Virus record (IMG/VR): IMGVR_UViG_3300028558_000791
Location: 1-64,000 of that record
DNA length: 64,000 nucleotides
Direction: 5' to 3' (one strand)
Shown here: positions 29,930-57,250 of the stretch, piece after piece
Layout: each line of letters begins with the position of its first letter
Numbering within the stretch: position 1 is the first letter of the stretch
Notes under the pieces: model-generated
Seen by the model: the letters and a program-made list of their open reading frames with translations, nothing else
Databases searched by the model: none
What the model was told of the DNA's origin: nothing
Made by a program: the position numbers and the translations under genes

Positions 29930-30537
29930 AAATCTTCATTATAGGTTTACCAAAGAGTGGTCGAACGACCGTATCCAAAGCCTTAGTGGAAGCTCACGGC
30001 TTTGAATACATTGACGCAACGTCATGGGTTCGATCTACCTATCGTGACCGTAAAGAGGGCGAACACCCTCACCAATATGAAGATGAATACCAGGCATACT
30101 TAACTAAAAGAATGATGGTTAATCCATGGTTTATTAGCGATCATGTTAGAGAGATGATGAAGGTTGTTGGTAAAGAGTATACAAACTTTGTCATCGATGG
30201 CATCATTAGTCCTAAAGACTTTTCTGTCTTATTCGATTATCGAGAAGACGTCGCTGTCTTTTTGAATAGAACGGATAATGAACACGAGTACAGAGACCAC
30301 GAAAACATTGGCGTCTCGGTTATCCGAGACTATTGTTTCTGGATGTCTGCTGCCGGCGTTCTATCTAAAGATAGATGGCTGGAATACAACTTCAAAATTC
30401 CTGGAGAGGATTCTGATTTTGTCAAGGCCATGGGTGCACAGAACAGTGTATTCATTACGAAGTCAATCAATAAAGTGATTGCTCATTTGATTGAACGTCT
30501 TAAAGGAAGCCCTCAAGATGGGAATCAAATTTATTGA
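29926..30537 (+). CDS. P-loop nucleotide kinase-like protein
   Basis: GLPKSGRTT Walker A variant; VIDG. Confidence 0.65.
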   Translation: MKIFIIGLPKSGRTTVSKALVEAHGFEYIDATSWVRSTYRDRKEGEHPHQYEDEYQAYLTKRMMVNPWFISDHVREMMKVVGKEYTNFVIDGIISPKDFSVLFDYREDVAVFLNRTDNEHEYRDHENIGVSVIRDYCFWMSAAGVLSKDRWLEYNFKIPGEDSDFVKAMGAQNSVFITKSINKVIAHLIERLKGSPQDGNQIY

Positions 30538-31474
30538 TTTGTTTGCTGGTATTGGGGGATTCAGAGTAGCTCTGGAAAATGCCGGGGCTACCTGCGTCTT
30601 CTCGTCTGAAATAGATAAATATGCCCTACAGGTTTATAAGGCAAATTTCAATGAAGATGCTAGTGGCGATATCACAAAAATCAAAGCGGAAGATATCCCG
30701 GCGCATGATGTTTTATGTGCTGGGTTTCCCTGTCAAGCCTTCTCTGAGTTTGGACAGAGAAAAGGGTTTAGTGATCCAAGAGGTACCCTTTTCTTTGAGA
30801 TACTTAGAGTAGCCAAACACCATAAACCTAAAGTAGTTTTACTAGAAAATGTATTGGGACTCACTTATCATAATGGTGGGGATACGTTTGAAACTATTAA
30901 GAATAGTCTAGGTGCTATGGGGTACCAAGTCCATTGGCAGCTCTTAGATGCATCTATGTTTGATCTTCCTCAAAGAAGAAAGAGAGTTTTCATAGTTGGC
31001 ATCAGAAAAGATATTAAGAAGCCCTTCAAGTTCCCAGAGGGACAATTAACAAGTAAAGGTATGAAGGACATCATAGAGTCTAATGTAGACGCTAATCACT
31101 TCATAGCTGAAGAGCGCTGGGAACATGTACTAAAGCAAAAGGCTGCTGGCAAATGTAAGCTGAGTCACTTTGTAATTGCACCAGACGAACTAGCTCACAC
31201 TCTACTTACCTCTAAATATGAGCACAACCTAGTAGTGGATCATAGTGTGCCGACTGGTACGTTTCATAATGTGAAAGCAAAAACGGCGAAAGCGGCTCGT
31301 ATCAACAAGCAACATGTCCGCCGTTTGACTCCCAAGGAATATTGTAGATTACAAGGGTTCCCAGATACATTCCAGATGCCGGTCTCTAACAAGCAATGCT
31401 ATAGATTGTTTGGTAACGCCGTAGCTGTTCCAGTAGTCGCTGCAATTTTCGAAGAGATTAAGAAAGTGTTATGA
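30518..31474 (+). CDS. DNA (cytosine-5)-methyltransferase
   Basis: FAGIGG, GFPCQ, ENV, QRRKR, RLQGFP, GNAV. Confidence 0.95.
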   Translation: MGIKFIDLFAGIGGFRVALENAGATCVFSSEIDKYALQVYKANFNEDASGDITKIKAEDIPAHDVLCAGFPCQAFSEFGQRKGFSDPRGTLFFEILRVAKHHKPKVVLLENVLGLTYHNGGDTFETIKNSLGAMGYQVHWQLLDASMFDLPQRRKRVFIVGIRKDIKKPFKFPEGQLTSKGMKDIIESNVDANHFIAEERWEHVLKQKAAGKCKLSHFVIAPDELAHTLLTSKYEHNLVVDHSVPTGTFHNVKAKTAKAARINKQHVRRLTPKEYCRLQGFPDTFQMPVSNKQCYRLFGNAVAVPVVAAIFEEIKKVL

Positions 31475-31641
31475 TTGAAGTAGCTTCTGAAGCTCTTCTT
31501 GAAACAATTGATCAAAGATATCTTGAGCCATTTTGTCAGCTTGAGCTTGGTCAATTTCTCCTGGCTGGTTGCCCACTTCTTGAGCCATCTTACGAATCTT
31601 TGCTTCTTCCATAATTTGGGAGAGAGTATCCATTCTTTTAG

Positions 31642-34134: not shown

Positions 34135-34205
34135 GTGACCTTCTAAAACTTTTGGATTTGCTAGACTGTTATATATACAGCATTATGACCAAAAGGGGAT
34201 AACTA

Positions 34206-35393
34206 ATGAAAGTAGTGTATACTGGCGAGGATATGCCTGAAACGTTTACAAAATCCATCTTTTTAGCTGGACCTACGCCACGCAATAAAGATGAGCAGGA
34301 ATCCTGGCGTCCCGATGCCTTGCAGATTCTAGAAGATAAAGGATTTGATGGAGTTGTTTTCGTCCCTGAAGGACGTGATGGCCAGTTTAAACTAGATTAT
34401 GATGACCAGGTTGGCTGGGAAGAGAAGTATCTCAACGTGGCTGATTGTATCGTCTTCTGGGTTCCTCGTGACCTAGAACCAGATAGCAAAGGTTATCCTA
34501 AGATGGCAGCCTTTACTACTAATGTAGAGTTTGGAACCTGGCAGTCGAGCGGTAAGATTGTATTTGGTGCTCCGCCTGACGCGACTAAGAATGGGTATTT
34601 AAAACATTACGCCGAGAAGTATAGCGTCCCGGTAGCTGAGTCGCTGGTGGAAACGCTAGACGATGCCATGGGAATGGTAGAAGATGGTGCCGAGCGTAGT
34701 GGCGGGGAGCGATATGTTCCACTGTTCATCTGGAAACAGGATTCATTTCAGTCTTGGTATAAATCTCAGACTGATGCCGGTAATCGTTTAGAAGAAGCGC
34801 GTTTGCTTTATAGCTTTCGTCCCCGCTATAAGAGTTTTGTTTTCCTTTGGATTCTACATACTAAAATCTATGTTGAATCAGAAGATAGGGTAAAAGATAA
34901 TGAATTTGTTCTGGCCCGTCCTGATATTTCTTCTGTCTGCCTATACCACAAAGTGTCTGCTGGCTTCCCTGCGTCGTGGAAAGACATCGAAGTAGTTTTG
35001 GTTAGGGAATTTAGGGCTCCAGCCTCTACTAAAAATGGATTCATTCTGGAACTTCCAGGAGGAAGCTCAACTAAGGAAGCTAATCCAGAAGAGGTTGCTG
35101 CCGAAGAGGTGCATGAGGAGATGGGATTTTATATAGAACCATCTCGTTTGAAACTGCATGGCACTCGTCAGCTAGCTGCTACACTTTCCTCACACAAGTC
35201 TCATCTTTTTTCAGCGGAAATTACCGAAGAAGAAGCTGATTGGTTTAAGTCTCAGGAAGATATTGCTCACGGTAAAGAAGAAGATAGCGAAAGAACATTT
35301 ATTGAAGTTCACCCCATCTCTCAGTTAGTAAATGAAGAGTCAATTGACTGGACTACATTAGGACAAATTCTATCTGTAATTTCTAAAGTTTAA
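34206..35393 (+). CDS. Nucleoside 2-deoxyribosyltransferase-like domain fused to NUDIX hydrolase
   Basis: IFLAGPTPR...WE...TNVEFG; ELPGGS...AAEEVHEEMG. Confidence 0.8.
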   Translation: MKVVYTGEDMPETFTKSIFLAGPTPRNKDEQESWRPDALQILEDKGFDGVVFVPEGRDGQFKLDYDDQVGWEEKYLNVADCIVFWVPRDLEPDSKGYPKMAAFTTNVEFGTWQSSGKIVFGAPPDATKNGYLKHYAEKYSVPVAESLVETLDDAMGMVEDGAERSGGERYVPLFIWKQDSFQSWYKSQTDAGNRLEEARLLYSFRPRYKSFVFLWILHTKIYVESEDRVKDNEFVLARPDISSVCLYHKVSAGFPASWKDIEVVLVREFRAPASTKNGFILELPGGSSTKEANPEEVAAEEVHEEMGFYIEPSRLKLHGTRQLAATLSSHKSHLFSAEITEEEADWFKSQEDIAHGKEEDSERTFIEVHPISQLVNEESIDWTTLGQILSVISKV

Positions 35394-35421
35394 GAACCGG
35401 GTAATTTTGTCATATGATATT

Positions 35422-35583
35422 ATGTTCGATGACAAACTATACAAGTTTCTTTTTAAATGCGATGACTGTGCAATGATTGTCTCTATCGAGTTAGAGGAAG
35501 AAGACGAGCTAGAGAAGGTCAATGAGAATAAGTTCGTTCTCGAATGTCCTTGCGGTGGCCAGAGTCACGTACTGCGAGACTAA
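35422..35583 (+). CDS. 53-aa zinc-ribbon protein (not in ORF track)
   Basis: Hand translation: CDDC...CPCG. Confidence 0.55.
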   Translation: MFDDKLYKFLFKCDDCAMIVSIELEEEDELEKVNENKFVLECPCGGQSHVLRD

Positions 35584-35683
35584 TTTCATATACATACCTA
35601 TCAATACTGATATATAAAACGTATCGAAAGAGGGTTTCGATTTTCGGGCTACGTCCGTTTATTTTAGAAAATTATCTACGTCC

Positions 35684-35712
35684 TTGACGGCGAATGTGCA
35701 GAGTTTTACTAT
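35684..35712 (+). promoter_or_regulatory. sigma70-like promoter of Ro60 gene
   Basis: TTGACG-N17-TACTAT. Confidence 0.6.
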
Positions 35713-35787
35713 GCGCAACTCGACGACATCGGCATGTTTCGTTTCAATTTGTTGGGACTATTTCCCAAATATGGAAGGTGTATTATT

Positions 35788-37419
35788 ATGTCAAACAAGA
35801 ACTTATTCTCAAACAAGAACAAGCTAACGGTATCTGTTTCTAAGAAGGTAACTCTGCCAACCAACACGGTTAATGAGGCAGGTGGAACTGCATATAAGCT
35901 GTCCGACAAGGCTGCTTTGGCGCAGTACGCCATGACTGGTACGTTCAACGGTACATACTATGCATCCGATGCAGATCAACTTAAGAAGGTCCTTGAGTTG
36001 GCAAACAAGGTAGATCCAAAGTTCGTCGCTAAGCTGGCAGTGTACGCACGCCAGAGAGGCTTGATGAAGGATATGCCTGCCGTTCTTGCAGCCGTCATTG
36101 CTGGAAGAGACGCTGACCTATTGGCTACGATTTTCGATAGAGTAATCGACAATCCAAAGATGCTTCGTAACTTCGTTCAGATCATCCGATCTGGCGCAAC
36201 TGGCCGTAAGTCCTTGGGAACTCGCCCAAAGAAGTTGGTACAGAAGTATCTTGAGAACTTGACCGACGAGCAGTTGTTCAAGGCTGATGTTGGTAACGAT
36301 CCGTCGTTGCAGGACATCATCAAGTTGGTTCACCCAAAGCCAACTAACAAGCAGCGTTCTGCGTTGTACGGTTACTTGCTCGACAAGGAGTACAACAAGA
36401 GAGACCTCGTGTCTTTGGCACAACAGTTCGAAGCATTCAAGAAGGATATGAAGGGAGAGATCCCAGATGTTCCGTTCCAGATGTTGACGGCTCTGCCATT
36501 GACTGATACGCACTGGAAGCAGATTGCTGAGAATGCAACCTGGAACCAGATCCGTATGAACCTCAATACGTTTGCTCGTCACAACGTATTGGCTGACAAG
36601 AAGCTGGTCGATGTTTTGGCAGCAAAGCTATCGGACCCAGAGCAGGTCAAGCGTTCCAAGACGTTCCCATATCAGTTGTTCACCACTTACTTGAACGTGG
36701 ACGCCACGATTCCAAGCAAGCTGACGAACGCATTGCAAGATGCGGCTGATTCTTCTTTGGATAACATTCCTGAGTTCCCAGGAAAGGTCTTCGTAATGGT
36801 TGACACTTCTGGTTCTATGGGCTCTGCCGTCACCGGTAAGAGAGTAAATCCAAAGACTGGTAAGGAGGAATCCTTTACGACTAAGGCTCGATGCGTAGAC
36901 GTGGCAGCACTTTTCGCAGCAGCAATCTTGCGCAAGAATCCAGACACTGAGATTGTGCCATTCGACACCTCAGTACATGTTGGTCACCGATTCAATCCAC
37001 GTGATTCGATCATGACCAATGCAAAGACTCTAGCTTCATTCGGTGGTGGTGGTACCAACTGCTCCGCTGCTTTGGAGTATGTCAACAAAAAGGCTGGCAA
37101 GGGCGACCTTGTCATCTACGTGTCTGACAATGAGTCATGGGTTGATACGAAGGCATCTAACTCAGGTGTGTTCGGATACTACCGCCGTAATGGCACTGCC
37201 ACTATGGAAGAGTGGAATAAGTTCGCAGCCCGTAACAAGGGTGCAAAGCTTGTCTGTATCGACATTCAACCAAACTCCTCCACCCAAGCACACGACAGGG
37301 ATGACATCCTGAACGTGGGAGGATTCAGTGACCAGGTGTTCGATGTAATCGCAAGATTCGCCGAGCTTGGAAACAACAAGGATCTCTGGATCAAGACGAT
37401 CGAAGACGTCAAACTCTAA
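35788..37419 (+). CDS. rsr: Ro60 / TROVE domain RNA-binding protein (Rsr) with vWA domain
   Basis: NEAGGTAY, TGTFNGTYY, LVHPKP, RMNLNTFARH, MIDAS VDTSGSM, GGGTNCS, VSDNESW. Confidence 0.93.
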   Translation: MSNKNLFSNKNKLTVSVSKKVTLPTNTVNEAGGTAYKLSDKAALAQYAMTGTFNGTYYASDADQLKKVLELANKVDPKFVAKLAVYARQRGLMKDMPAVLAAVIAGRDADLLATIFDRVIDNPKMLRNFVQIIRSGATGRKSLGTRPKKLVQKYLENLTDEQLFKADVGNDPSLQDIIKLVHPKPTNKQRSALYGYLLDKEYNKRDLVSLAQQFEAFKKDMKGEIPDVPFQMLTALPLTDTHWKQIAENATWNQIRMNLNTFARHNVLADKKLVDVLAAKLSDPEQVKRSKTFPYQLFTTYLNVDATIPSKLTNALQDAADSSLDNIPEFPGKVFVMVDTSGSMGSAVTGKRVNPKTGKEESFTTKARCVDVAALFAAAILRKNPDTEIVPFDTSVHVGHRFNPRDSIMTNAKTLASFGGGGTNCSAALEYVNKKAGKGDLVIYVSDNESWVDTKASNSGVFGYYRRNGTATMEEWNKFAARNKGAKLVCIDIQPNSSTQAHDRDDILNVGGFSDQVFDVIARFAELGNNKDLWIKTIEDVKL

Positions 37420-37427
37420 TCGTCAGA

Positions 37428-37492
37428 GCCTCTAACCGAAGGGTGCCCGAGTGAAGACCGGGTTGCTGATGCAAGTTCAGCATGGAGGCCCA
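37428..37492 (+). ncRNA. Compact tRNA-like RNA directly after Ro60
   Basis: GCCTCTA/TGGAGGC plus CCA; GCTGA-TGCAAGT-TCAGC T-like arm; CCCG/CGGG arm. Confidence 0.55.
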
Positions 37493-37494
37493 TC

Positions 37495-37911
37495 ATGAAT
37501 AAGTTAGAAGATTTAGTGGCGGCAGCAAGACTAGCCGCCCAACATTCGTACAGTCCATACAGCAACTTCAAAGTTGCATCCGCCGTAGAAATGGAAGATG
37601 GAAGCATCTTTAGCGGCTCTAATGTAGAGAATGCGTCTTACGGTCTCACTATCTGTGCAGAGCGCAACGCAATCTTTCAAGCTGTGTCTAAGGGACATCG
37701 CCTAATAAAACGTATCATTGTCTACGCTCCTTCACCAACTGTTCGTACTGGCCCTTGTGGAGCCTGTAGGCAGGTAATTAAAGAATTTGCCGATGAATAT
37801 ACACTAATCATTGGCGCCTGTAACTCAGACGATATATTAACTTTTACAATGGAAGATTTGTTACCAAAGAGTTTTGGTCCCGATAATCTTCTAAAGAAAA
37901 GAAACCAATGA
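37495..37911 (+). CDS. cdd: Cytidine deaminase
   Basis: YSPYS, NVENASYGLTICAER, PCGACRQ. Confidence 0.93.
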   Translation: MNKLEDLVAAARLAAQHSYSPYSNFKVASAVEMEDGSIFSGSNVENASYGLTICAERNAIFQAVSKGHRLIKRIIVYAPSPTVRTGPCGACRQVIKEFADEYTLIIGACNSDDILTFTMEDLLPKSFGPDNLLKKRNQ

Positions 37912-38753
37912 TTAAGCGAAATGGCGTAGAGGTAATGAACGCCCGCACTAAAAACGTCTCTATTGCCAAAGAAACAATCGCTATAATCAACAACCAAAAA
38001 TACACCAATCTCAATGGAGATACAGTAGATATCTCAGTAGAAATGGATGCGGCCATAGACGGCACTCATTACTATGAGGCTGACGTTTTAGTCGGCATGC
38101 CCGCCGATCAGGCTCCCATTCACGCTACGATTGAGGTAGTAAATGAGACTACTGCTCAAGCTGCTGTTCGATTGCAAGCTAAAGGAAAAACTAATCTAGT
38201 TGCCCTTAACTTCGCTTCAGCGCGTAATCAAGGTGGAGGCTTTCTTTCTGGAGCTTTGGCTCAAGAAGAAGACTTGTGTAGGGCTTCTGGCCTATATGGT
38301 TGCCTGAAACGCAAACCATTGTTCTACAATGCAAACATCCTGTGTGACGATGCATTCTATACAAATGGAGTTCTCTACTCACCTAACGTTCCGTTCTTTA
38401 GGGATGATCATAATCTGTTTTTAGAGAAGCCTTTTCCGCTTTCTATCGTCTCAGCACCAGCTCCTAACCTTTCTAGCACCAAGTCGAACATCGACCCTAA
38501 AGTATTAACCTCTCTTATTAGAGAGCGTACTGTTAGGATTCTACAGGTGGCTCATGCCAATGGGCATAAGAACATCATTTTAGGTGCCTGGGGCTGTGGA
38601 GCCTTCGGAAATGATCCTGAAATGGTATCAAAAGCATTTATGTTGGCCCTAACTAAAGTTCCATATTTCGAGCATGTAACCTTTGCGGTATATGATACCA
38701 GAGAGCCGTACGTTTTATATGAAACGTTCAAAGAAGTCTGTAACGCTGTATAG
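37908..38753 (+). CDS. TIGR02452/DUF2263 bacterial-type poly(ADP-ribose) glycohydrolase
   Basis: LNFASA..GGGF..GALAQEEDLCRAS, LGAWGCGAFGN. Confidence 0.9.
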   Translation: MIKRNGVEVMNARTKNVSIAKETIAIINNQKYTNLNGDTVDISVEMDAAIDGTHYYEADVLVGMPADQAPIHATIEVVNETTAQAAVRLQAKGKTNLVALNFASARNQGGGFLSGALAQEEDLCRASGLYGCLKRKPLFYNANILCDDAFYTNGVLYSPNVPFFRDDHNLFLEKPFPLSIVSAPAPNLSSTKSNIDPKVLTSLIRERTVRILQVAHANGHKNIILGAWGCGAFGNDPEMVSKAFMLALTKVPYFEHVTFAVYDTREPYVLYETFKEVCNAV

Positions 38754-39315
38754 ACCAACCGGCCCAAAAGAGTTAGATTTGATTAAAAAGTCTAACTATA
38801 AGAAGTTCCCGCCCCGCTTGCCTGAACAACCAATTTTCTATCCAGTTCTTACAAAAGAGTATGCGGTAAAGATTGCACGAGATTGGAATGTAAAAGCTTC
38901 CGGAATAGGTTTTGTACTAGAATTCAAGGTCCGAAAGGATTTTCTAGACAAATATCCAGTGCAAGTAGCTGGCGGCAATTCTCATCAGGAGTATTGGATT
39001 CCAGCGGAAGAATTAGAAGACTTCAATCAAGCTCTAGTGGGCGAGATAAAGGTCACTGAGACGTACCAAGAGTGGTACATTTACATCCTAAAGTGTTCTG
39101 ATGGTACTTTGTACACAGGTATCACGAACAATCTGGGTAAACGAATCAAACAACATAACGAGGGTAAAGGCGCAAAGTACACGAAGGGTCGTGGTCCCGT
39201 TGCCCTTGTTAAGTTTTTCACCCGATTAACTAAGGGTGAAGCCCTGAAACTTGAATATCAGATCAAACAACTCTCTAAAGAAGAGAAACTGAATTACAAT
39301 GAGCAGAAGAGGTAA
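38719..39315 (+). CDS. Conserved LYRP..RLPEQPIFYPV domain fused to GIY-YIG nuclease
   Basis: C-terminal YIYILKCSDGTLYTGITNN..R..HN..GAKYT. Confidence 0.75.
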   Translation: MKRSKKSVTLYRPTGPKELDLIKKSNYKKFPPRLPEQPIFYPVLTKEYAVKIARDWNVKASGIGFVLEFKVRKDFLDKYPVQVAGGNSHQEYWIPAEELEDFNQALVGEIKVTETYQEWYIYILKCSDGTLYTGITNNLGKRIKQHNEGKGAKYTKGRGPVALVKFFTRLTKGEALKLEYQIKQLSKEEKLNYNEQKR

Positions 39316-39871
39316 AAAAAGTTTTAGTCCTCAATTTGAAAGAGACTACACTTTTTATCTGTCTAATAAAGATAACTTCACATTTGCTGGTTCAGATCTA
39401 AAATTACAATATCGTATTCAGTTTCCAGGAGAACCGGAACCAATTGGTAAGGATGAAGGGGGAAAGGACATTAATGTTCCATTCTCTATTCCTTACTCAG
39501 CAACTGGTAAAACTGCCAAGGTATGTTTCTATTCGCTAGATAGCGAAGGTAAATGTAAACCTTGTGCAGAACCGCAACTTCTAGTAGAAATTCTCACTTG
39601 TAAGGCCGCAATCAATCTACAGATTAAGATTTGGTCACAGAGTCGAGCCGAGTATACTTTATCCAAGATTGAGTTACAAGAATATCTTGATCACTATCAA
39701 GCTCCTGAATGGGTTTTCAAAGCGATTGAGAATCAAAAACTTAAGATTTTGAAGGAATGGAGCGCCGAAAAGCTTTATAAATCCGACTATTACAAGCGGG
39801 CTTATGAGCTTCATATGGGCGAATTTTTAGAAGAGATGCGTGGTTCCGGTGTTATATTAGATCCGAAATGA
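39299..39871 (+). CDS. Hypothetical protein
   Basis: Packed ORF. Confidence 0.55.
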   Translation: MSRRGKKSFSPQFERDYTFYLSNKDNFTFAGSDLKLQYRIQFPGEPEPIGKDEGGKDINVPFSIPYSATGKTAKVCFYSLDSEGKCKPCAEPQLLVEILTCKAAINLQIKIWSQSRAEYTLSKIELQEYLDHYQAPEWVFKAIENQKLKILKEWSAEKLYKSDYYKRAYELHMGEFLEEMRGSGVILDPK

Positions 39872-39893
39872 TCAAACACTGATTAGGAACATA

Positions 39894-40595
39894 ATGACCA
39901 AGGAAAACTTTACATCTATCAACGTAATCATCGACGCATCTGGCTCGATGTCTCACCTCACCCATGACACCATCGGGAACTTTAATACCTTCTTGCAAGA
40001 GCAAAAGGCATTCCCCGGTGAAGCTGTCTTCACTCTTTGTACTTTCAATACTGATTATCACTTGGTCCATGACTTCGTGAAGATTGCTGGTGTCCCTAGC
40101 TTGGATGCTAAGACCTATGTTCCACAAGGTGGAACCGCTTTGTTAGATGCTATGGGATCAACTATTGATTCTGTTGGTAAGAAGTTGGCCGCATTACCAG
40201 AAGAGGAACGTCCTTCTAAGGTTATTTTCCTCATCATCACTGATGGTCATGAAAACTCCAGTCGTCGTTTTGATGCGGCTCAAGTTAAGTCTATGGTCGA
40301 ACATCAGAAGGATACTTATAGTTGGGAGTTCGTATTCATGGGCGCTAACATTGATGCTATCTCTGCCGGCACCAACCTTGGTATCTCTATGCAGAACACT
40401 CTCAACTACGTTCCAAGTGCCGCTGGTACCGAGAATTTGTACAAGAGTATCAGTTCTAACGTAAGCAGCTATCGTGGCTCCAACTCTTCTAGAGTTGACT
40501 TTTTCAATCAGACTCAACAGGGCGTTGGCTCAGTTACTCCTCCAGTCGTAGTTACAACTACCACTACGGTAACTCCTCCAAAGACCTCAAAGTAA
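39894..40595 (+). CDS. von Willebrand factor A domain protein
   Basis: IIDASGSM, GGTALLDA, ITDGHENSS. Confidence 0.88.
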   Translation: MTKENFTSINVIIDASGSMSHLTHDTIGNFNTFLQEQKAFPGEAVFTLCTFNTDYHLVHDFVKIAGVPSLDAKTYVPQGGTALLDAMGSTIDSVGKKLAALPEEERPSKVIFLIITDGHENSSRRFDAAQVKSMVEHQKDTYSWEFVFMGANIDAISAGTNLGISMQNTLNYVPSAAGTENLYKSISSNVSSYRGSNSSRVDFFNQTQQGVGSVTPPVVVTTTTTVTPPKTSK

Positions 40596-40807: not shown

Positions 40808-41416
40808 ATGACTAAAGCATTATATGTTGGTAGTTTCGACCCTATCACCAACGGTCATATTGATATTATGAAGCGTAGCTTACAGTTCTGTAAGCAACTG
40901 GTGATTGGGATAGGTATCAATCCTAACAAGACTACTATGTTTGATGAGCGGGAGAGGAACTCCATGATTTTTCAAACGATAGTGAAGGAGTTTGACTTCC
41001 TTCATTCAACCAATACTTCGGTTGCTTCTTTTCAGGGACTTACAGTAGAGTATGCTAAAGAAATTGGTGCAACGATTCTAATTCGCGGAATTAGATCCGT
41101 TTCTGATTTCGAATATGAAATTAATTTGGCCAACATCAACAAGGTTCTGGCCCCATCAATTGAAACAATTTTCCTGCCCACCAGTCCTGATCTGGCGGTT
41201 GTCTCCTCTTCAATGGTAAAAGAAATTGCAAAGTTGAACGGAGATATTTCAAGATTCGTACCCAGCTATATTGCCGAGAGGATTCATTCAAAATTCGGTT
41301 TCTTCAAGCATGGCAAGACAGAGATTGGCACTGATACTATCAATAGATTACGAGAAGCTACAGTAGCTATTGAGAAAGAATTGGGAATCAAACCAAAAGA
41401 TGAGGGCGAAAAATAA
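40808..41416 (+). CDS. coaD: Phosphopantetheine adenylyltransferase
   Basis: GSFDPITNGH, IRGIRSVSDFEYE, VSSSMVKEIA. Confidence 0.92.
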   Translation: MTKALYVGSFDPITNGHIDIMKRSLQFCKQLVIGIGINPNKTTMFDERERNSMIFQTIVKEFDFLHSTNTSVASFQGLTVEYAKEIGATILIRGIRSVSDFEYEINLANINKVLAPSIETIFLPTSPDLAVVSSSMVKEIAKLNGDISRFVPSYIAERIHSKFGFFKHGKTEIGTDTINRLREATVAIEKELGIKPKDEGEK

Positions 41417-41430
41417 AAATTAGCGACGGG

Positions 41431-41458
41431 TTGACGAGCTAATTTTTAAGACTACAAT
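41431..41458 (+). promoter_or_regulatory. sigma70-like promoter of the RNA cluster
   Basis: TTGACG-N16-TACAAT. Confidence 0.55.
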
Positions 41459-41561
41459 GTTCGTTACTTCGGAGGCGCAAACCAAAGAATAATCAAAAAA
41501 GAATAGTGTGATAAAAATCTAGGCATAGCGTGATATAATACATACGATTCACCATTTTCAT

Positions 41562-41644
41562 GGGGGAGTAGCTCAGCGAAAGAGCGCAAGGATACCGTAA
41601 GGAAAACCTTGAGGTCCCTGGTTCAATTCCAGGCTCCCCCACCA
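41562..41644 (+). ncRNA. tRNA-like RNA with 15-nt anticodon loop
   Basis: Intact acceptor, D and T arms plus ACCA; CAAGG-ATACCGTAAGGAAAA-CCTTG. Confidence 0.85.
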
Positions 41645-41708
41645 TTTCAGTAGTTGTCTGAAAGTTTACCAAAGCATTAGCCTGGTATTACAATCAAAAC
41701 AACATTAT

Positions 41709-41784
41709 GGGACTGTAGCTCAGTGTTAGAGCGTCGGATTAAAAACCCGAAGGTCGCAGGTTCAACTCCTCGCCAGTCCCACCA
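41709..41784 (+). tRNA. Atypical tRNA, anticodon AAA (Phe)
   Basis: GGGACTG/CAGTCCC plus ACCA; loop TTAAAAA; bulged T stem. Confidence 0.7.
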
Positions 41785-41790
41785 TCTAAT

Positions 41791-41877
41791 CCCTCGTAAT
41801 TGGATCCGTGGGAGGATCTCCGGTCTGTAAAACCGGCGCCAATGTGCTAGGTAGTTCGATTCTACTGCGGGGGACCA
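41791..41877 (+). tRNA. 8/4-fold tRNA (allo-tRNA/Sec-like), anticodon GTA
   Basis: 8-bp acceptor CCCTCGTA/TGCGGGGG, 4-bp T stem, 6-bp D stem, CCGGT-CTGTAAA-ACCGG. Confidence 0.75.
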
Positions 41878-41967
41878 AACTGTAAGAGGAGCTTCGGCTC
41901 CAGTATTTATGCGGTACAAACCAACTAAGTATTTACAGTCTGTTCAATGACAACTTAATATTTGTTT

Positions 41968-42044
41968 CGGGGACTGGCTCAACCTGGTAGAGCGTCTGTT
42001 TTGGGTACAGAAGGTTGCGAGTTCAAATCTCGCGTCCCCGACCA
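41968..42044 (+). tRNA. tRNA-Pro(TGG)
   Basis: Canonical cloverleaf, C1-G72, A73. Confidence 0.95.
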
Positions 42045-42047
42045 TAT

Positions 42048-42081
42048 CCTTCTTTTTGGGTTAAACCGAAGAGAGGGGCCA
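42048..42081 (+). ncRNA. Minihelix: 12-bp hairpin plus G-CCA
   Basis: CCTTCTTTTTGG-GTTAAA-CCGAAGAGAGGG-G-CCA. Confidence 0.6.
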
Positions 42082-42084
42082 TAA

Positions 42085-42159
42085 GCCTCTGTAGCTCAAG
42101 AAACAGAGCGTCGTCCGTTGAGGACGATGATGTAGGTGTAAAGCCTACTGGAGGCTCCA
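42085..42159 (+). tRNA. Atypical tRNA (loop CG-TTG-AG, T-loop TGTAAAG)
   Basis: All four stems pair; G33; T-CCA end. Confidence 0.7.
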
Positions 42160-42168
42160 TGTTACTAT

Positions 42169-42245
42169 GCCACTACTAGCTCAATTGGTTAGAGCACTGG
42201 ATTGTGGATCCGGGGGTTTCGGTTCGATTCCGAAGTTTGGTACCA
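42169..42245 (+). tRNA. tRNA-His(GTG)-like, imperfect acceptor
   Basis: CTGGA-TTGTGGA-TCCGG; lacks C73. Confidence 0.75.
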
Positions 42246-42353
42246 TGACGAATGTCCGAGTAGGATTACATTTTTATGCAAAAAAACCGATGGGGTTCGA
42301 TTCCCCTTTAGGGCTGGCGCCAGGCAAAACATCTTATTCATTTCTTGTCGTCA
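42246..42353 (+). ncRNA. Y RNA-like 1 (T-arm cargo)
   Basis: TGACGA-ATG..GAGTAGGAT-TACA / ATCTTATTC..TTG-TCGTCA; internal GGGG-TTCGATT-CCCC. Confidence 0.8.
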
Positions 42354-42355
42354 AT

Positions 42356-42432
42356 CAGAGAATGTTGTTTAATGGTTAGCATCCGTGCCCTGGAAGCATG
42401 TGGTCCCGGTTCGAATCCGGGTTCTCTGACCA
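42356..42432 (+). tRNA. tRNA-Pro(TGG), atypical loop
   Basis: CAGAGAA/TTCTCTG plus ACCA; CGTGC-CCTGGAA-GCATG. Confidence 0.75.
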
Positions 42433-42503
42433 ATGCCAGTATATCTGGAAACTAATGAAGAACATTATTGGTAGTTCTGTTCTCGATGAAGTTTCTTGCT
42501 GGT

Positions 42504-42619
42504 CATACCGAATGAGCTTTAAGAGCTACTCAGTCTTAATAAATAAGTGCATGGGATAGCTACCTTAAAAATAACCGTTATAGTTAAGGCTCATAAGGAA
42601 ACACAATTTTGTCGGTATG
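42504..42619 (+). ncRNA. Y RNA-like 2 (divergent)
   Basis: CATACCGA-ATG / TTTTG-TCGGTATG; second helix GAGCTTTAA/TTAAGGCTC; lacks GGATTACA. Confidence 0.6.
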
Positions 42620-42623
42620 TTTT

Positions 42624-42724
42624 TGGGATACATTAAGTTGGTAATCATTACGATTCTGGTTCGAGTGGTAGGAACACAAATCGGAAACGTAAGTGAGAAG
42701 GTTCGAATCCTTCTGTCCTGACCA
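42624..42724 (+). ncRNA. tRNA-like RNA with long replaced anticodon arm
   Basis: TGGGATA/TGTCCTG plus ACCA; GAAGG-TTCGAAT-CCTTC; arm TTAC-GATT..AATC..GTAA. Confidence 0.7.
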
Positions 42725-42727
42725 AAT

Positions 42728-42801
42728 GACTTTGTGGACAAATTATTAAGTCACTCCCGTTAGAGGGAGAGATGTAAGTGCAAGGCTTGCCAAGGTCACC
42801 A
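42728..42801 (+). ncRNA. tRNA-like RNA with 6-nt anticodon loop (GTTAGA)
   Basis: GACTTTG/CAAGGTC plus ACCA; CTCCC/GGGAG; T-loop TGCAAGG. Confidence 0.7.
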
Positions 42802-42802
42802 T

Positions 42803-43019
42803 GTAACAAATGCCCCGAGAGGATTACATTCATTAGGAGAACGAGGTCGTGGGTCCGAGTCCCACCACTGCTACCATCCCAAAGCACGTCATTAAATTGA
42901 AGGGACACTCGAAAGAGTGATGTTGCCTGACTTACTTAGCGAAAGCTATCTAAGTCCTCATAGCAGTGTAGCTCAGTTGGCAGAGCGCGAAAAACATCTT
43001 TTCAAATTTTTGTTGTTAC
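42803..43019 (+). ncRNA. Y RNA-like 3 containing a circularly permuted tRNA with internal CCA
   Basis: GTAACAA-ATG..GAGAGGAT-TACA / ATCTTTTC..TTG-TTGTTAC; T arm plus CACTGCT-A-CCA precedes AGCAGTG plus D arm. Confidence 0.85.
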
Positions 43020-43022
43020 TAT

Positions 43023-43056
43023 CTCCGCTGTAGGGTCAAACCTAAAGCGGGGACCA
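43023..43056 (+). ncRNA. Minihelix: 12-position hairpin plus A-CCA
   Basis: CTCCGCTGTAGG-GTCAAA-CCTAAAGCGGGG-A-CCA. Confidence 0.6.
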
Positions 43057-43348
43057 AAAGACCAATCGTATCGGTCTTTATGAGAGAGATACATTCCTCT
43101 CAAAAGCATCTAGTGGTCGTCCGTTATCACTGGAGCTAAATAGTTAGCGGGCAGTATTCAGGGTTTGCTCCAGCCGAATTATGAATACTATTATTGAGAT
43201 TAAATTTGTTGGGGGCGTATTCGGTTGCGCTTGATATTCCGAAACTCTAATGGGAGTGAATATAGTTCCATTGTAACACTCAGCTATAACGATTAAGTAA
43301 CTCAGAGTGTTGCGCTTTACTAGCAATAACAATGCATAGTATATGTAT

Positions 43349-43422
43349 TCCGAGGTCGTTCAACGGTAGGACGGGTCGCTGTTAACGACTCTATATTGGT
43401 TCGATTCCAGTCCTCGGAGCCA
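43349..43422 (+). tRNA. tRNA-Asn(GTT)
   Basis: Canonical; G73-CCA. Confidence 0.95.
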
Positions 43423-43428
43423 GAATAT

Positions 43429-43515
43429 TCTGTGGTAGCCTAATGGTAAGGCAGGTGGCTGTTAACCACCCGGTGGTAAAACACTTTCTAGGTTCGAGTC
43501 CTAGCTGCAGAGCCA
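43429..43515 (+). tRNA. tRNA-Asn(GTT) with long variable arm
   Basis: GGTGG-CTGTTAA-CCACC; V-arm GGTG-GTAAAA-CACT. Confidence 0.85.
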
Positions 43516-43624
43516 AATAATACGGGGATTGATTAGACCGAAATGATCCGTATTAGCTGTTATGTTTGGTCAATTCTGCATAACGACAGAAGCTATGTCC
43601 AGTAAAATGGAGTCGTCTTCTGAA

Positions 43625-43880
43625 GATGAATGCCGATAAGGATTACACTAATACAACCGAGCCTCACGCCGTAGAATGCCCGCAAGGATTTCATTCCACA
43701 AATACCGGGTGGCTCACATCTCCCACTACATTACAAGAGATGATGAAAATTAAACTGAGATGTCTGACAAGCCTGCCTACCAGTTAGAGTAACAGGCTCA
43801 GTGGTGTAACTGATAATACACTGTGATTACTTGTTTACTTGTAAACAAAATAATTGCTATCTTTATCAACTTTAGTCATC
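43625..43880 (+). ncRNA. Y RNA-like 4 (large unknown cargo)
   Basis: GATGA-ATG..GATAAGGAT-TACA / ATCTTTATC..TAG-TCATC. Confidence 0.7.
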
Positions 43881-43887
43881 AAAATAT

Positions 43888-43962
43888 TCTGCTCTAGTGT
43901 AATTAGCACGGCGATCTCTTTGTAGGTCGAGGGTCATGGTTTAAGTCCATGGGGCGGAGCCA
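43888..43962 (+). ncRNA. tRNA-like RNA (Gln-like T1-A72, G73) with irregular anticodon arm
   Basis: TCTGCTC/GGGCGGA plus GCCA; CGATCT-CTTTGT-AGGTCG. Confidence 0.65.
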
Positions 43963-43982
43963 AAGCAAATCATGAGAAAGCA

Positions 43983-44411
43983 ATGTTTACTTCAACCGGA
44001 ATCCTTCAATATGATCCTGGTCAGGGTCTAAAACATTTCGATCCATGGTGGGCTCTTCTAGCCTGTGACGATGAAGTATCTAGGTATTATGCCTGGTTAC
44101 TAAAGAGACACGGAGTAGAAGTCTACCCTAACGATAAAGGGTTGTGGGGAACACACGTTTCAGTTTTGAAAGGTGCCGTCCCTCCCAATCAAGATAAGTG
44201 GGGCAAGTATCAAGACTTCGAAGTAGAAATCCATCTCAATCATCTTGTCCGTTATGATAACGGGAAACATGCTTGGGTAGATGTATACTCAGAAGATTTA
44301 TCAGCAATCCGACAGGAGTTAGGCTTCGATGCCAAGCCCTGGTACCATCTGACAATTGGTAGGTTGGTGAGACCATTTGATGTGGACTTTACCAAATATG
44401 GCATAACCTGA
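43983..44411 (+). CDS. 2H phosphoesterase family protein
   Basis: Two HxS/T motifs (THVSV, YHLTI) about 65 aa apart. Confidence 0.7.
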   Translation: MFTSTGILQYDPGQGLKHFDPWWALLACDDEVSRYYAWLLKRHGVEVYPNDKGLWGTHVSVLKGAVPPNQDKWGKYQDFEVEIHLNHLVRYDNGKHAWVDVYSEDLSAIRQELGFDAKPWYHLTIGRLVRPFDVDFTKYGIT

Positions 44412-44427
44412 TATATAATCAGCACAT

Positions 44428-44502
44428 ACCCTCGTACGCATCGGGTGAGGCGGGAAGCTTGTCAAGCTTTTGAGGGCGGTTCGAGTCCGCTCGGGGGTGC
44501 CA
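44428..44502 (+). tRNA. tRNA-Asp(GTC)
   Basis: GAAGC-TTGTCAA-GCTTT; G73-CCA. Confidence 0.85.
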
Positions 44503-44569
44503 AAGTCAAATGCCTTGATAGGATTACATTTTACCAAAAGAAAACATCTTATCTACTTTTTGTTGACTT
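44503..44569 (+). ncRNA. Y RNA-like 5 (minimal, stem only)
   Basis: AAGTCAA-ATG..GATAGGAT-TACA / AAAC-ATCTTATC..TTG-TTGACTT. Confidence 0.8.
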
Positions 44570-44572
44570 TTT

Positions 44573-44666
44573 CGATCACGCGTAGCTGGTTGCTCGGGCG
44601 AGACTTATAATCTTGCAAGGACTGATATTCCGTAACGGCAGGGTTCGATTCCCTGGTGATCGACCA
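44573..44666 (+). tRNA. Atypical tRNA-Ile(TAT), 6-bp anticodon stem, long variable region
   Basis: CGATCAC/GTGATCG plus ACCA; GCGAGA-CTTATAA-TCTTGC. Confidence 0.75.
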
Positions 44667-44669
44667 TAT

Positions 44670-44746
44670 GGCACTGTAGCCCAAAGGCAGGAGGCACCTG
44701 ACTTAAAATCAGTTCAGTGTGGGTTCAAATCCCACCAGTGCTACCA
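44670..44746 (+). tRNA. tRNA-Leu(TAA) with short variable loop
   Basis: CTGA-CTTAAAA-TCAG; no type II arm. Confidence 0.85.
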
Positions 44747-44765
44747 ATAAAGATATAGTTAATAT

Positions 44766-44841
44766 GGAACTTGAGCAAGTATGGTTATTGCATCGGTCTG
44801 AAAAGCCGACAAACGGGGTTCGATCCCCCGAGGTTCCACCA
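44766..44841 (+). tRNA. tRNA-Phe(GAA)
   Basis: TCGGT-CTGAAAA-GCCGA; ACCA. Confidence 0.9.
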
Positions 44842-44842
44842 A

Positions 44843-45193
44843 ATGAGAATTGTTCAAAAGCCTTGGGGCCATGAAGAAATCTGGGCAGAAACTCCCAACT
44901 ATGTTGGAAAAGTTCTCTCAATCAATCCTGGTCACAGACTCTCAAGACAATATCATAATCTCAAAGAAGAAACATTCAGAGTTCTTTTTGGGACGTTGAC
45001 GCTAGAAATAGGTGAGGGTGACGATATAGTTACTCACGTATTAACGGCAGGTCAAACTTTTCACTGTCCTCCAAAGACAGTTCATAGAATGATTTGCCAA
45101 CGAGTTATCAACTATGCACCAGTAAATGTATTGGAAGTATCAACCAATCATTTAGATGATGTAGTAAGATTAGAAGACGATTATAAAAGATAA
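44843..45193 (+). CDS. Cupin domain protein (mannose-6-phosphate isomerase C-terminal-like)
   Basis: KPWG, LSRQYH..KEE, HR, DDVVRLEDDY. Confidence 0.85.
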   Translation: MRIVQKPWGHEEIWAETPNYVGKVLSINPGHRLSRQYHNLKEETFRVLFGTLTLEIGEGDDIVTHVLTAGQTFHCPPKTVHRMICQRVINYAPVNVLEVSTNHLDDVVRLEDDYKR

Positions 45194-45270
45194 CGTGCTA
45201 TAGCTCAGTTGGTTAGAGTGCCTCTCTGATAAGGAGGAAGTCCCAGGTTCGAATCCCGGTAGCACGACCA
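45194..45270 (+). tRNA. tRNA-Ile(GAT)
   Basis: Canonical cloverleaf. Confidence 0.92.
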
Positions 45271-45481
45271 GTAACGAATGCAGTTAGGATTACATCCATA
45301 ACGACCTTAAAGTAGTTGACAGAGCCGCGAGGCGCTGAATCGATGGCAACAAAACGATCACCAGGTAATGCTGAGGTCCATCAGACTCTTGAGTCGAAGT
45401 TGCGGGGCGAACGGGAAGTATCTCGAAAGAGACTTTCAATGTGCCGGTCACACCCAGTATCTTAGCAATTTTTGTCGTTAT
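45271..45481 (+). ncRNA. Y RNA-like 6 (large unknown cargo)
   Basis: GTAACGA-ATG..GTTAGGAT-TACA / ATCTTAGC..TTG-TCGTTAT. Confidence 0.78.
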
Positions 45482-45485
45482 ACAT

Positions 45486-45561
45486 GGGACGGTAGCTCAG
45501 TGGTTAGAGCGCAACGCTGATAACGTTGAAGTCGATGGTTCGATTCCATCTCGTCCTACCA
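45486..45561 (+). tRNA. tRNA-Ile(GAT)
   Basis: Canonical cloverleaf. Confidence 0.95.
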
Positions 45562-45866: not shown

Positions 45867-45894
45867 AGGGGACAACATTGTTGCTCCCTCAATC

Positions 45895-46048
45895 GAGGCA
45901 AATGCACCGAAGGTTTACATTTGGAATAATCATATCGTCGTAAGACGGTCGCAGGTTCGAATCCTGCAACTTCCGAAAGGAAGTTTGGCTGAGTGGTCTA
46001 AAGCAATGATGCTGAAAAGCATGCTAACTTTCAAATTTTTGTTGCTTC
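45895..46048 (+). ncRNA. yrlA: Y RNA-like 7, classical YrlA architecture
   Basis: GAGGCAA-ATG / TTG-TTGCTTC; T arm GCAGG-TTCGAAT-CCTGC, acceptor AACTTCC-GAAA-GGAAGTT, then D arm. Confidence 0.85.
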
Positions 46049-46050
46049 AT

Positions 46051-46179
46051 CTCCCGCTAGTTTAAAACGAAACACTTGTTATAGAGGACGTATACTTAAT
46101 CTATGATGAGCAAGTAGTAGAGCAAAACACCTCCACGCTAAGGAGGAGATTGCGAGTGCAAGTCTCGCAAGGGAGACCA
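46051..46179 (+). ncRNA. tRNA-like RNA with ~50-nt hairpin inserted in the D loop
   Basis: CTCCC/GGGAG plus ACCA; CCTCC-ACGCTAA-GGAGG; GCGAG-TGCAAGT-CTCGC. Confidence 0.7.
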
Positions 46180-50072: not shown

Positions 50073-50149
50073 GGGTCTTTTGATGTAAAGGCTGGCCTCT
50101 AGACTTTAGTGCTAGAGGACATCGGGTTCGACTCCCGAATGATCCGCCA
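50073..50149 (+). ncRNA. tRNA-like RNA, no D stem, loop CT-TTA-GT
   Basis: GGGTC/GATCC plus GCCA; CCTCTAG/CTAGAGG; TCGGG-TTCGACT-CCCGA. Confidence 0.65.
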
Positions 50150-50271: not shown

Positions 50272-50374
50272 GCTTCGCAATTCGAAATAATCTCTGCTGG
50301 CTGTCTTCCGCGGCTGCAAACAAAGAATACTGGCACGGACAGAGAACATGGTGAAATTCCATGGCGAAGCACCA
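50272..50374 (+). ncRNA. tRNA-like RNA with tmRNA-TLD-like layout
   Basis: GCTTCGC/GCGAAGC plus ACCA; CTCTG/CAGAG enclosing about 43 nt; CATGG-TGAAATT-CCATG. Confidence 0.7.
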
Positions 50375-56566: not shown

Positions 56567-56898
56567 ACATGAGCTTAGCTTGGTCAAAGGATATGGAATT
56601 GGATCCTGGTACGTTTGGAGGTTCTCCGGCATGCCATGTTTTAGTAGATATGATGAATCACAATGTTATTCCTATTATAGAGAAGCATCGTGTTTTATCA
56701 TTCATCAATGATGCTATCTATCAATTCAAGTGGTTATCCACTGTGAAGGAGTATGGCGTCAAGGAGAGGTCTATGGTTCTGATGAGGGACGATATTCTAT
56801 CTAGGGTGGATCATATGCCATATCCTGCCAAGTTTAATTCACATCTGAAGAACGTGATAACTCACCACTTCAGACGATACTTGAAAGAAGAGACCTAG
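56563..56898 (+). CDS. Hypothetical protein
   Basis: Packed ORF. Confidence 0.5.
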   Translation: MNMSLAWSKDMELDPGTFGGSPACHVLVDMMNHNVIPIIEKHRVLSFINDAIYQFKWLSTVKEYGVKERSMVLMRDDILSRVDHMPYPAKFNSHLKNVITHHFRRYLKEET

Positions 56899-57250
56899 AC
56901 AATCGCTCCCGTAAGGAGAGGAAAGTCGGAGCTACGTAGGGCAATTTGCTGGCTAACGGCCAGGCGCAGTGATGCGACAGATAGTGCAACAGAAAAGAAA
57001 CCGCCATGAATCCGCCAGGCCCGAAAGGGAGCAACGGTAGATGGTAAGGGTGAAATGGTGGGGTAAGAGCCCACCGCACCTATAGTGATATAGGTGGCAA
57101 GGTAAACCTCAGATGTAGCAAGCTAAATAGAGAGTGACTTGTCCGGTCAATACTCTCGGGTTAGTGCTGGAGCCATTAGGTAACTAACGGCCAAGATTAA
57201 TGATTGTCTCGATTTATAGACAGGACTCCGCTTATAGGGTGTCTTCTTTC
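56883..57250 (+). ncRNA. rnpB: RNase P RNA, bacterial type A
   Basis: GAGGAAAGTCGGAG, AGTGCAACAGAAA, GGGTGAAA..GGTAAGAG, GGTAAACC, ACAGGACTCCGCTTA; P1 GAAAGAAGA/TCTTCTTTC. Confidence 0.93.

Follow-up and report, generated by a model that had tools for sequence, protein, structure and literature searches.

The DNA considered here is the first 64 kilobases (kb) of a 480,838-base-pair (bp) virus record in IMG/VR (IMGVR_UViG_3300028558_000791; 43% G+C), and "the window" denotes this whole stretch of 64,000 nucleotides (nt). A dense array of transfer RNA (tRNA) genes, all on one strand of the window, contains two 34-nt hairpins, MH1 and MH2, that reproduce the top half of a tRNA as a bare minihelix. 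We conclude that MH1 and MH2 are almost certainly real, selected RNA structures and not chance hairpins. We further suggest, with moderate confidence, that these minihelices are tRNA surrogates whose main role is to punctuate the transcript and so free the small RNAs that lie next to them.

Two hairpins with the dimensions of a tRNA acceptor/T stack

Both hairpins (Table 1) had been recognized in an earlier reading of the letters alone (the sequence-only reading) as 34-nt elements with 12 stem positions, a GT(T/C)AAA loop, a discriminator base and CCA, and this description stands, including the single G.A mismatch assigned to the second of them. The arms of MH1, CCTTCTTTTTGG (5') and CCGAAGAGAGGG (3'), flank the loop GTTAAA; those of MH2, CTCCGCTGTAGG (5') and CCTAAAGCGGGG (3'), flank GTCAAA and form 11 pairs, one of them G.U, with the mismatch at position 8. 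The predicted folding energies are -18.0 kcal/mol for MH1 (z -4.3) and -19.2 kcal/mol for MH2 (z -5.3). The reverse strand of MH1 gives -5.3 kcal/mol (z +0.4), so that this hairpin folds on the + strand only, as expected for an RNA structure that works through G.U pairs.

The 12 stem positions correspond to a 7-bp acceptor stem stacked on a 5-bp T stem, and in both hairpins they are followed, as in a tRNA, by one nucleotide and CCA. This 12-position acceptor/T stack, the 3' RCCA and a U at position -1 make up the features of a minimal RNase P substrate. Other hallmarks of a tRNA are absent. Neither ARAGORN nor the Rfam tRNA model matches MH1 or MH2, even at E values up to 10, and at 34 nt the hairpins are too short to hold a D or an anticodon arm. 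Their 6-nt loops differ from the 7-nt T loop UUCRANY, and the phage's real tRNAs have loops of the TTCGAAT type. At E up to 10 no Rfam family describes the minihelices: the mascRNA model has no match to them, and the weak matches of the YrlA, YrlB and mascRNA models fall on real tRNAs. The sequence-only reading called the hairpins stand-alone, which is apt in that they are separate from any cloverleaf; they are nevertheless embedded in a dense array, each lying 3 nt after another RNA, tRNA-Pro in the case of MH1 and a Y-RNA-like element in the case of MH2.

A conserved family confined to the tRNA strand

The bare geometry is not rare. A loose criterion (12 positions, at most one mismatch, G.U allowed, loop of 4-9 nt, NCCA) yields 32 matches in 2 x 480 kb, and the case therefore rests on the shared loop, position, strand and conservation. 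We considered these in related loci found via the CoaD-like protein, comprising 8 syntenic IMG/VR loci and 74 metagenome loci, about 40 of which belong to the same phage clade and have in common the tRNA order Tyr-Pro-...-Asn-Asp-Ile. A strict geometric scan of the related loci (12 positions, loop of 6-7 nt, at most one mismatch, at most three G.U, NCCA) gave 22 matches on the tRNA strand and none on the other. The sequence-only reading had proposed such a search of related phage tRNA clusters and had made conservation of the geometry one of the tests of its idea; the geometry is conserved, in eight orthologues of MH2 and in the 25 matches of the covariance model described next.

Two covariance models were built, R1 from 14 copies and R2 from 21 relatives' copies with the window's own left out. 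Applied to 334,684 bases (both strands of 40 related loci) at E up to 5, R1 returned 25 matches, which include one identical duplicate and one copy truncated by a contig end; every match is within an array and on its tRNA strand, and 11 were absent from the training set. Genome-wide, R1 finds MH1 and MH2 and nothing else in the 480-kb record; three related records (359, 267 and 96 kb) have one match each, in every case within the tRNA array. R2, which had seen neither hairpin, recovers both from the two strands of the 480,838-bp record, MH2 with 43.0 bits (E 2.4e-8) and MH1 with 35.8 bits (E 2.4e-6); the next match has an E value of 6.7. On the training alignment, A3, 97% of the cells pair, a figure that is circular because the rows were picked by structure and that is not used as evidence. 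In a separate pattern scan of IMG/VR, the shared T-arm-like core with CCA had 33 matches, all of them chance or, in L032/L023, a terminator that follows a stop codon and has no tRNAs in its vicinity. A pattern scan for a conserved downstream motif returned only the three relatives that were already known.

Positional orthologues allow the pairing to be judged independently of the search models. MH2 has orthologues in seven relatives (L051, L049, L054, L056, L078, L042 and L044/L037), which with the window's copy makes eight, at a site 3' of gttgttac-tat and 5' of a conserved downstream RNA; the gttgttac-tat itself precedes the minihelix in six of the seven relatives and in the window. When the eight are aligned by their flanks, 97.9% of the cells pair and six of the 12 pairs have two-sided changes, and sliding the structure by 1-3 columns reduces pairing to 32-63%. 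The mismatched position 8, G.A in the window and A.A in L051, is U.G or C.G in the other orthologues. CCA is present in seven of the eight; the L044/L037 lineage has UCA with the hairpin intact. Orthologues of MH1 lie 3 nt after tRNA-Pro(UGG) in L077, L053 and L052 (the last cut by the contig end), with two-sided change in one pair and several other pairs passing through G.U.

Relatives have at least two further minihelix slots, one at the array head (slot A) and one directly before the Y-RNA-like element B (slot C). In L051, L049, L040 and L041 slot C has a minihelix, and in the window it has a 74-nt tRNA-like gene. Across at least four non-orthologous slots the 12-position geometry is identical, and CCA with a purine discriminator is found in 24 of 26 copies. 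The loop is GUNAAA in slots A, B and D (D being the MH2 type) and C-GNRA-G in one slot. The first stem pair differs by slot (C-G, G-C or A-U), and no acceptor identity set is shared.

The minihelices also present the same 5' and 3' signals as the tRNAs around them. The leader is TAT in both window copies, and among 25 relatives' minihelices it is TAT in 17, AAT in five, CAT in two and TAC in one; the tRNAs of the clade likewise have TAT most commonly (38%), then AAT (22%) and CAT (10%), and 274 of 337 have a U at -1. Of these 337 relatives' tRNAs, 313 encode CCA, as do 55 of the 57 tRNAs of the phage's own genome.

Y-RNA-like elements and a phage Ro60

The array also holds RNAs that resemble the bacterial Y RNA YrlA. 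In M. smegmatis, YrlA has a 7-bp acceptor stem, is cleaved by RNase P and has CCA added (PMC4201824). Sequence and alignments give element B the YrlA order of modules: 5' motif, V, T arm, 7-bp acceptor stem, D arm and 3' strand. Its T arm, 3' acceptor strand and encoded ACCA end at 42876, an 86-nt linker follows, and the 5' acceptor strand and D arm run from 42963; the acceptor strands covary between phages. We had considered element B as a permuted tRNA gene, an idea dropped for the YrlA-type architecture because of its closing helix, its 5' motif and the presence of a Ro60 gene. The 5' motif of element B reads AUGCC..GA.AGGAUUACAU. In the Y-like elements generally it is CCGAGAGG or CCGAAGG, against GNCGAAN0-1G in strict YrlA, and variants CCCGAGAGG and CCCGAAGG, in which the first G is not kept, stand at the expected place.

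A strict motif scan finds about 45 such elements in the related loci fetched, so that they are multi-copy and interleaved with tRNAs. An alignment of 17 sequences supports the closing helix, a second helix, the T hairpin (canonical loop UUCGAUU) and a small GGC-UGGY-GCC hairpin, with compensatory changes in 16 of 22 pairs. When the scan was relaxed to accept G.U in the closing helix, the ends shifted and the output was noisy, and we relied on the strict version; weaker candidates from the relaxed scan lie at 45270-45481, 43624-43867 and 45894-46048. Because Rfam RF02553 (YrlA) has no match to elements A or B or to their orthologues in L051 at E up to 10, we call these elements YrlA-like in architecture and not members of the family.

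The window encodes a Ro60 orthologue, presumably the protein partner of the Y-like RNAs. Its gene is on the same strand as element A and 4.8 kb from it; the cut-off used in PMC4201824 was 4 kb. In three related records, too, the array strand carries a TROVE gene, which lies about 6-9 kb away from the array minihelix.

MH2 is followed by another structured RNA, of no assigned kind (Table 1). It is about 240-290 nt long across relatives, has the invariant core GCGTANTCGGTTGCGCTTGA and has no Rfam match at E up to 10.

Minihelices and tRNAs are interchangeable at RNA boundaries

The positions of these RNAs relative to one another form the core of our argument. The first nucleotide of a Y-like RNA directly follows the CCA of a tRNA or minihelix (a gap of 0 nt), and 3-6 nt (usually NAU) separate its last nucleotide from the next tRNA or minihelix. 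Minihelices of slot D all lie 3-4 nt after the closing helix of a Y-like RNA, and a Y-like RNA begins 0 nt downstream of those in slots A and C and of the one at L039:15556. By our own tally, about 19 of about 24 distinct relatives' minihelices touch a Y-like RNA. MH2 sits at the boundary of a non-tRNA RNA on both sides, 3 nt after element B and 0 nt before the structured RNA at 43057-43348. Y-like RNAs of the B type are followed by tRNA-Gly or tRNA-Glu in L039, L053 and L038, and by a minihelix in eight genomes. Most Y-like copies are flanked by real tRNAs, and cleavage at these junctions is needed anyway, because the tRNAs on either side have to be freed with the right CCA end. We infer that the minihelix offers the same junctions where a tRNA is absent. 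The proposal in the sequence-only reading that the hairpins are processing signals thus gains comparative support, from the tRNA-like leader and CCA, from the abutting structured RNAs and from the tRNAs that take the same positions in relatives.

We suggest the following sequence of events. In these huge soil phages the array would be transcribed as one long tRNA and small-RNA transcript. RNase P, either the host's or one built on the phage's own type A RNA, would cut at 42047/42048 and 43022/43023 and so release the upstream RNA, which would keep a short UAU at its 3' end. A 12-bp stack with RCCA and U at -1 is a minimal substrate of RNase P in vitro, and the predicted cuts are consistent with it. 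A second nuclease would cut right after the CCA and create the 5' end of the downstream RNA. The RNase BN/Z of some bacteria cuts after CCA; a search of the phage genome for Lactamase_B_2 (RNase Z-type) genes had no matches, and a host enzyme would therefore be needed for this step. Such punctuation would act on non-tRNA RNAs that lack a real tRNA as neighbour, and would chiefly serve the Y-like partners of the phage Ro60. The 34-nt minihelix itself would be a by-product, or at most a secondary product.

Several points weigh against punctuation. The locus occurs in DNA metagenomes only, and in no run as RNA; in three RNA-type runs 4-7% of the sampled words are present, derived from relatives, and RNA ends cannot be read from them. 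One run, guessed to be of RNA, has a 185-nt contig that passes through the predicted RNase P site: it spans element B of a relative, continues into MH2 for 22 aligned nt and has 5 unaligned nt beyond, and could be a precursor or DNA. MH1 lies in the window between tRNA-Pro and a tRNA-like gene and has no Y-like neighbour, so that it is dispensable there as punctuation; a non-tRNA RNA does follow its orthologues in L077 and L053, yet they too have tRNA-Pro just upstream. The GUNAAA loop seems more conserved than a generic RNase P hairpin needs, and the phage lacks an RNase Z-type gene for the cut after CCA. Finally, the adjacency counts come from our own motif scans, of which the relaxed version is noisy. 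The placement of MH1 and the conservation of the loop keep alive a role for the minihelix in its own right, as a decoy, in titration or as a tag on a Y-like ribonucleoprotein (RNP).

Alternative readings of the minihelices

The alternative that survives best is that the 34-nt RNAs are functional in themselves, a released acceptor/T mimic that binds or titrates a reader of the tRNA top half. Candidate readers are a defence toxin that modifies the CCA end or cleaves the acceptor, the CCA-adding enzyme, EF-Tu and a synthetase. The exact 12-position length is what such readers measure in minihelix work in vitro, the near-constant CCA and purine discriminator would suit them, the GUNAAA loop and stem top are conserved in sequence across non-orthologous slots, and MH1 is kept 3 nt after tRNA-Pro, where a processing signal looks redundant. 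We nevertheless regard this as unlikely: the 480-kb genome has only two copies and three related records have one each, one lineage has UCA for CCA, the slots share no acceptor identity set, and the minihelices are tightly linked in position to the ends of other RNAs. The sequence-only reading went further and saw decoys for CCA-end toxins, an idea that gains no specific support: each genome has only two copies, one lineage ends in UCA, and a toxin or defence context was not found. A fuller version, if anything a little more doubtful, has stable, released "top-half tRNAs" acting alone alongside a Ro60/Y-RNA/RNase P module. Such RNAs might be charged or might engage CCA-end enzymes, and might distract host defences that target tRNAs or tune the enzymes that act on tRNA ends.

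More doubtful again is a minihelix that stays attached as a module of the Y-like RNP, a CCA tag on the 3' side (MH2) or the 5' side (slots A and C) of a Ro60-bound RNA. The 0-3-nt spacing to Y-like RNAs and the 185-nt contig, which spans a relative's element B into MH2, are what such a tag would predict, and YrlA RNAs themselves carry tRNA-like domains (PMC4201824). The contig, however, is that of a relative, is directionless and may be DNA; in the window no Y-like RNA adjoins MH1; and most Y-like copies are flanked by complete tRNAs that need release, which makes cleavage at the junction the rule.

The array contains many aberrant tRNA-like genes that form a continuum from cloverleaf to minihelix, and a minihelix and a 74-nt tRNA-like gene swap in one slot, so it could be argued that the hairpins are decaying tRNAs that have lost their D and anticodon arms and their function. 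This is very improbable, as two-sided changes maintain the pairing in phages whose CoaD proteins share about 57-71% identity, the same geometry recurs in four or more non-orthologous slots, G.U pairs make the folding strand-specific and all matches lie on one strand. Least probable of all are intrinsic terminators or attenuators within the array: the hairpins are stable and contain G+C, and one unrelated viral match that shares their loop is a terminator located behind a stop codon, but no U tract lies 3' of MH1 or MH2, the terminator scan calls neither, and their NCCA is followed by more RNA genes on the same strand.

The array and its genome

Table 1. Minihelices and associated features of the window.
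Feature	Position	Strand	Remarks
Promoter-like site	41431..41458	+	TTGACG, 16-nt spacer, TACAAT; between coaD and first array tRNA; consensus match only
tRNA-Pro(UGG)	41968..42044	+	5' neighbour of MH1; encoded CCA; ARAGORN; Rfam 64.3 bits
UAU leader of MH1	42045..42047	+	also 3-nt trailer of tRNA-Pro
MH1	42048..42081	+	34 nt; 12-bp stem (3 G.U, no mismatch), loop GUUAAA, discriminator G, CCA
Non-canonical tRNA-like gene	42084..42159	+	3' neighbour of MH1; 7-bp acceptor stem, T loop UGUAAAG, UCCA end
Y-RNA-like element A	42246..42355	+	shorter paralogue of B; 0 nt after a tRNA's CCA; ends AAU at tRNA-Pro 42356
tRNA-like element, 74 nt	42728..42801	+	acceptor stem, T arm, ACCA, aberrant core
Y-RNA-like element B	42802..43022	+	closing helix GUAACAA/UUGUUAC
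UAU before MH2	43020..43022	+	between closing helix of element B and MH2; predicted RNase P site 43022/43023
MH2	43023..43056	+	34 nt; 12 stem positions, loop GUCAAA, discriminator A, CCA
Structured RNA, unassigned kind	43057..43348	+	from CCA of MH2 to tRNA-Asn; alignment, RNAalifold: 17/51 pairs compensatory
tRNA-Asn(GUU)	43349..43422	+	closing unit downstream of MH2; ARAGORN/Rfam
Ro60 orthologue	35734..37419	+	TROVE and Ro60 vWA domains
RNase P RNA, bacterial type A	56887..57250	+	full length, phage-encoded; Rfam RF00010, 272.5 bits

The 480,838-bp record contains 57 tRNA genes and a transfer-messenger RNA (tmRNA), and a search of it for small-subunit ribosomal RNA found none, which indicates that it is not a cell genome. 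Its DNA occurs in rhizosphere and soil metagenomes, and megablast of 41500-45500 against GenBank phages gave no match. The array starts about 150 nt 3' of a coaD-like gene (40808-41416).

The phage RNase P RNA keeps, in the Rfam alignment, a CGGGU stretch at the site that we take, after the E. coli RNA, to be the CCA-binding GGU. A literature text search found no account of a phage-encoded RNase P RNA. The genome further encodes two nucleotidyltransferases of the PolyA_pol family, and searches of it for RtcB and Terminase_6C had no matches.

The aberrant tRNA-like genes of the window (42084-42159, 42624-42724, 42728-42801, 43890-43962, 46100-46179 and 50290-50374) have an acceptor stem, a T arm and NCCA, but their T loops (UGUAAAG, UGCAAGG) or their cores are unusual. 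They are missed, or only just called, by ARAGORN or Rfam, and the series grades from cloverleaf to minihelix; the orthologue of 42084-42159 in L051 reaches 35.2 bits with the Rfam tRNA model. A tRNA called Phe at 41709-41784 has the unusual anticodon AAA, as does the same call in the relative L038. Suppressor-type tRNAs with anticodons UUA and CUA lie at 50073-50149 in the window and at 172924-172997 and 173183-173255 of the same record (G000), a possible sign of stop-codon recoding in phage or host. The tmRNA is outside the window, at G000 170047-170403, with the tag peptide ANDNAFAMAA.

Other candidate RNAs are interspersed with these genes. A conserved non-coding stretch on the + strand follows the tRNA-Pro at 42356-42432, from 42433 to about 42640, and has a covarying long-range helix (ATACCGA/TCGGTAT, with GTACCGA/TCGGTAC in L051); relatives' copies of it end in TAT right before a minihelix. 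At 41878-41937 (+), 0 nt after the CCA of tRNA-Tyr, is a small RNA candidate with a CTGTAA/TTACAG closure and a UUCG-capped hairpin. In L077 (2004-2078) and L053 (7564-7636) an MH1-type minihelix precedes a 73-75-nt non-tRNA RNA of three hairpins and a terminal helix, which is absent from the window.

A small open reading frame within the array, 43983-44411 (+), has a weak 2H-phosphoesterase match (E 5e-4, below the Pfam cut-off), and its product is, from this sequence match, possibly an RNA-end repair enzyme. The genes upstream of the array, at 30491-40595, encode a C5 DNA methylase, a nucleoside deoxyribosyltransferase-NUDIX fusion, a deoxycytidine monophosphate (dCMP) deaminase, a microbial PARG and a GIY-YIG nuclease, functions in nucleotide metabolism and ADP-ribose removal that stand beside the RNA module.

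Significance and comparison with known systems

So far the tRNA minihelix has existed in the laboratory, as a construct, and in theory, as an ancestor of tRNA; here it is a conserved natural gene family, and full-text literature searches found no report of natural minihelix genes in phages. If our reading is correct, the phage accommodates many small RNAs other than tRNAs in a tRNA array and obtains their exact ends from the tRNA machinery, by the smallest possible signal, in a bacterial-virus parallel of mitochondrial tRNA punctuation and mascRNA. The novelty would lie in tRNA-like punctuation cut down to a bare top half with templated CCA, in a phage array and next to Ro60-associated RNAs. 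Should the minihelices instead act as top-half tRNAs, they would be the first natural counterpart of the minihelix of in vitro work and of theories on the origin of tRNA. The Ro60 gene, the multi-copy YrlA-like RNAs, the phage's own RNase P RNA and the aberrant tRNA-like genes make up a testable phage RNA module, and the 37-nt covariance model is a simple means of finding such signals elsewhere.

Synthetic acceptor-T minihelices are substrates in vitro of RNase P, the CCA-adding enzyme, synthetases and EF-Tu. The phage hairpins share with them the 12-bp coaxial stack, a capping loop, a discriminator, the 3' CCA and U at -1. They differ in being natural, conserved genes with a 6-nt GUYAAA loop (C-GNRA-G in one slot) in place of the 7-nt T loop; the enzymology belongs to the synthetic ones, and the phage minihelices are known from sequence.

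The tRNA-like domain of tmRNA likewise lacks an anticodon arm and combines an acceptor stem with a T arm and CCA. The minihelix, however, has no mRNA-like part, and the phage has a normal tmRNA elsewhere. The permuted two-piece tmRNA model RF04321 has a weak match (16.8 bits, far below the gathering score) to a relative's element B, where it covers the T arm, CCA, linker and acceptor part and not the minihelix.

Bacteria and phages have several non-tRNA substrates of RNase P, among them the 4.5S precursor, the C4 antisense RNA of P1 and P7, phi80 M3, and species 1 and 2 of the T4 tRNA cluster. Like the minihelices, these are hairpins or tRNA-like structures with a CCA-type 3' end, and some lie in phage tRNA clusters. 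In those cases the RNA is the functional product, whereas the phage minihelix, at 34 nt and in several slots, seems to serve its neighbours.

YrlA RNAs (PMC4201824) and elements A and B share the order of modules and the proximity of a Ro60 gene on the same strand, about 5 kb away in the window; M. smegmatis YrlA and element B also have the 7-bp acceptor stem in common. The phage elements differ in having no RF02553 match, a variant 5' motif, many copies per genome among tRNAs, and CCA encoded in the acceptor loop.

The closest functional parallel to the proposed punctuation is with tRNA-like structures at the boundary of another RNA, namely plant mitochondrial t-elements, which form mRNA ends through RNase P and RNase Z (PMC1920247), mitochondrial tRNA punctuation and mascRNA (RF01684). 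In these systems RNase P and a 3' endonuclease make the ends of the neighbour, as they would for the phage minihelices. The t-elements and mascRNA are degenerate eukaryotic cloverleaves that flank mRNAs or long non-coding RNAs, whereas the phage signal is a bare top half with templated CCA and flanks Y-like small RNAs.

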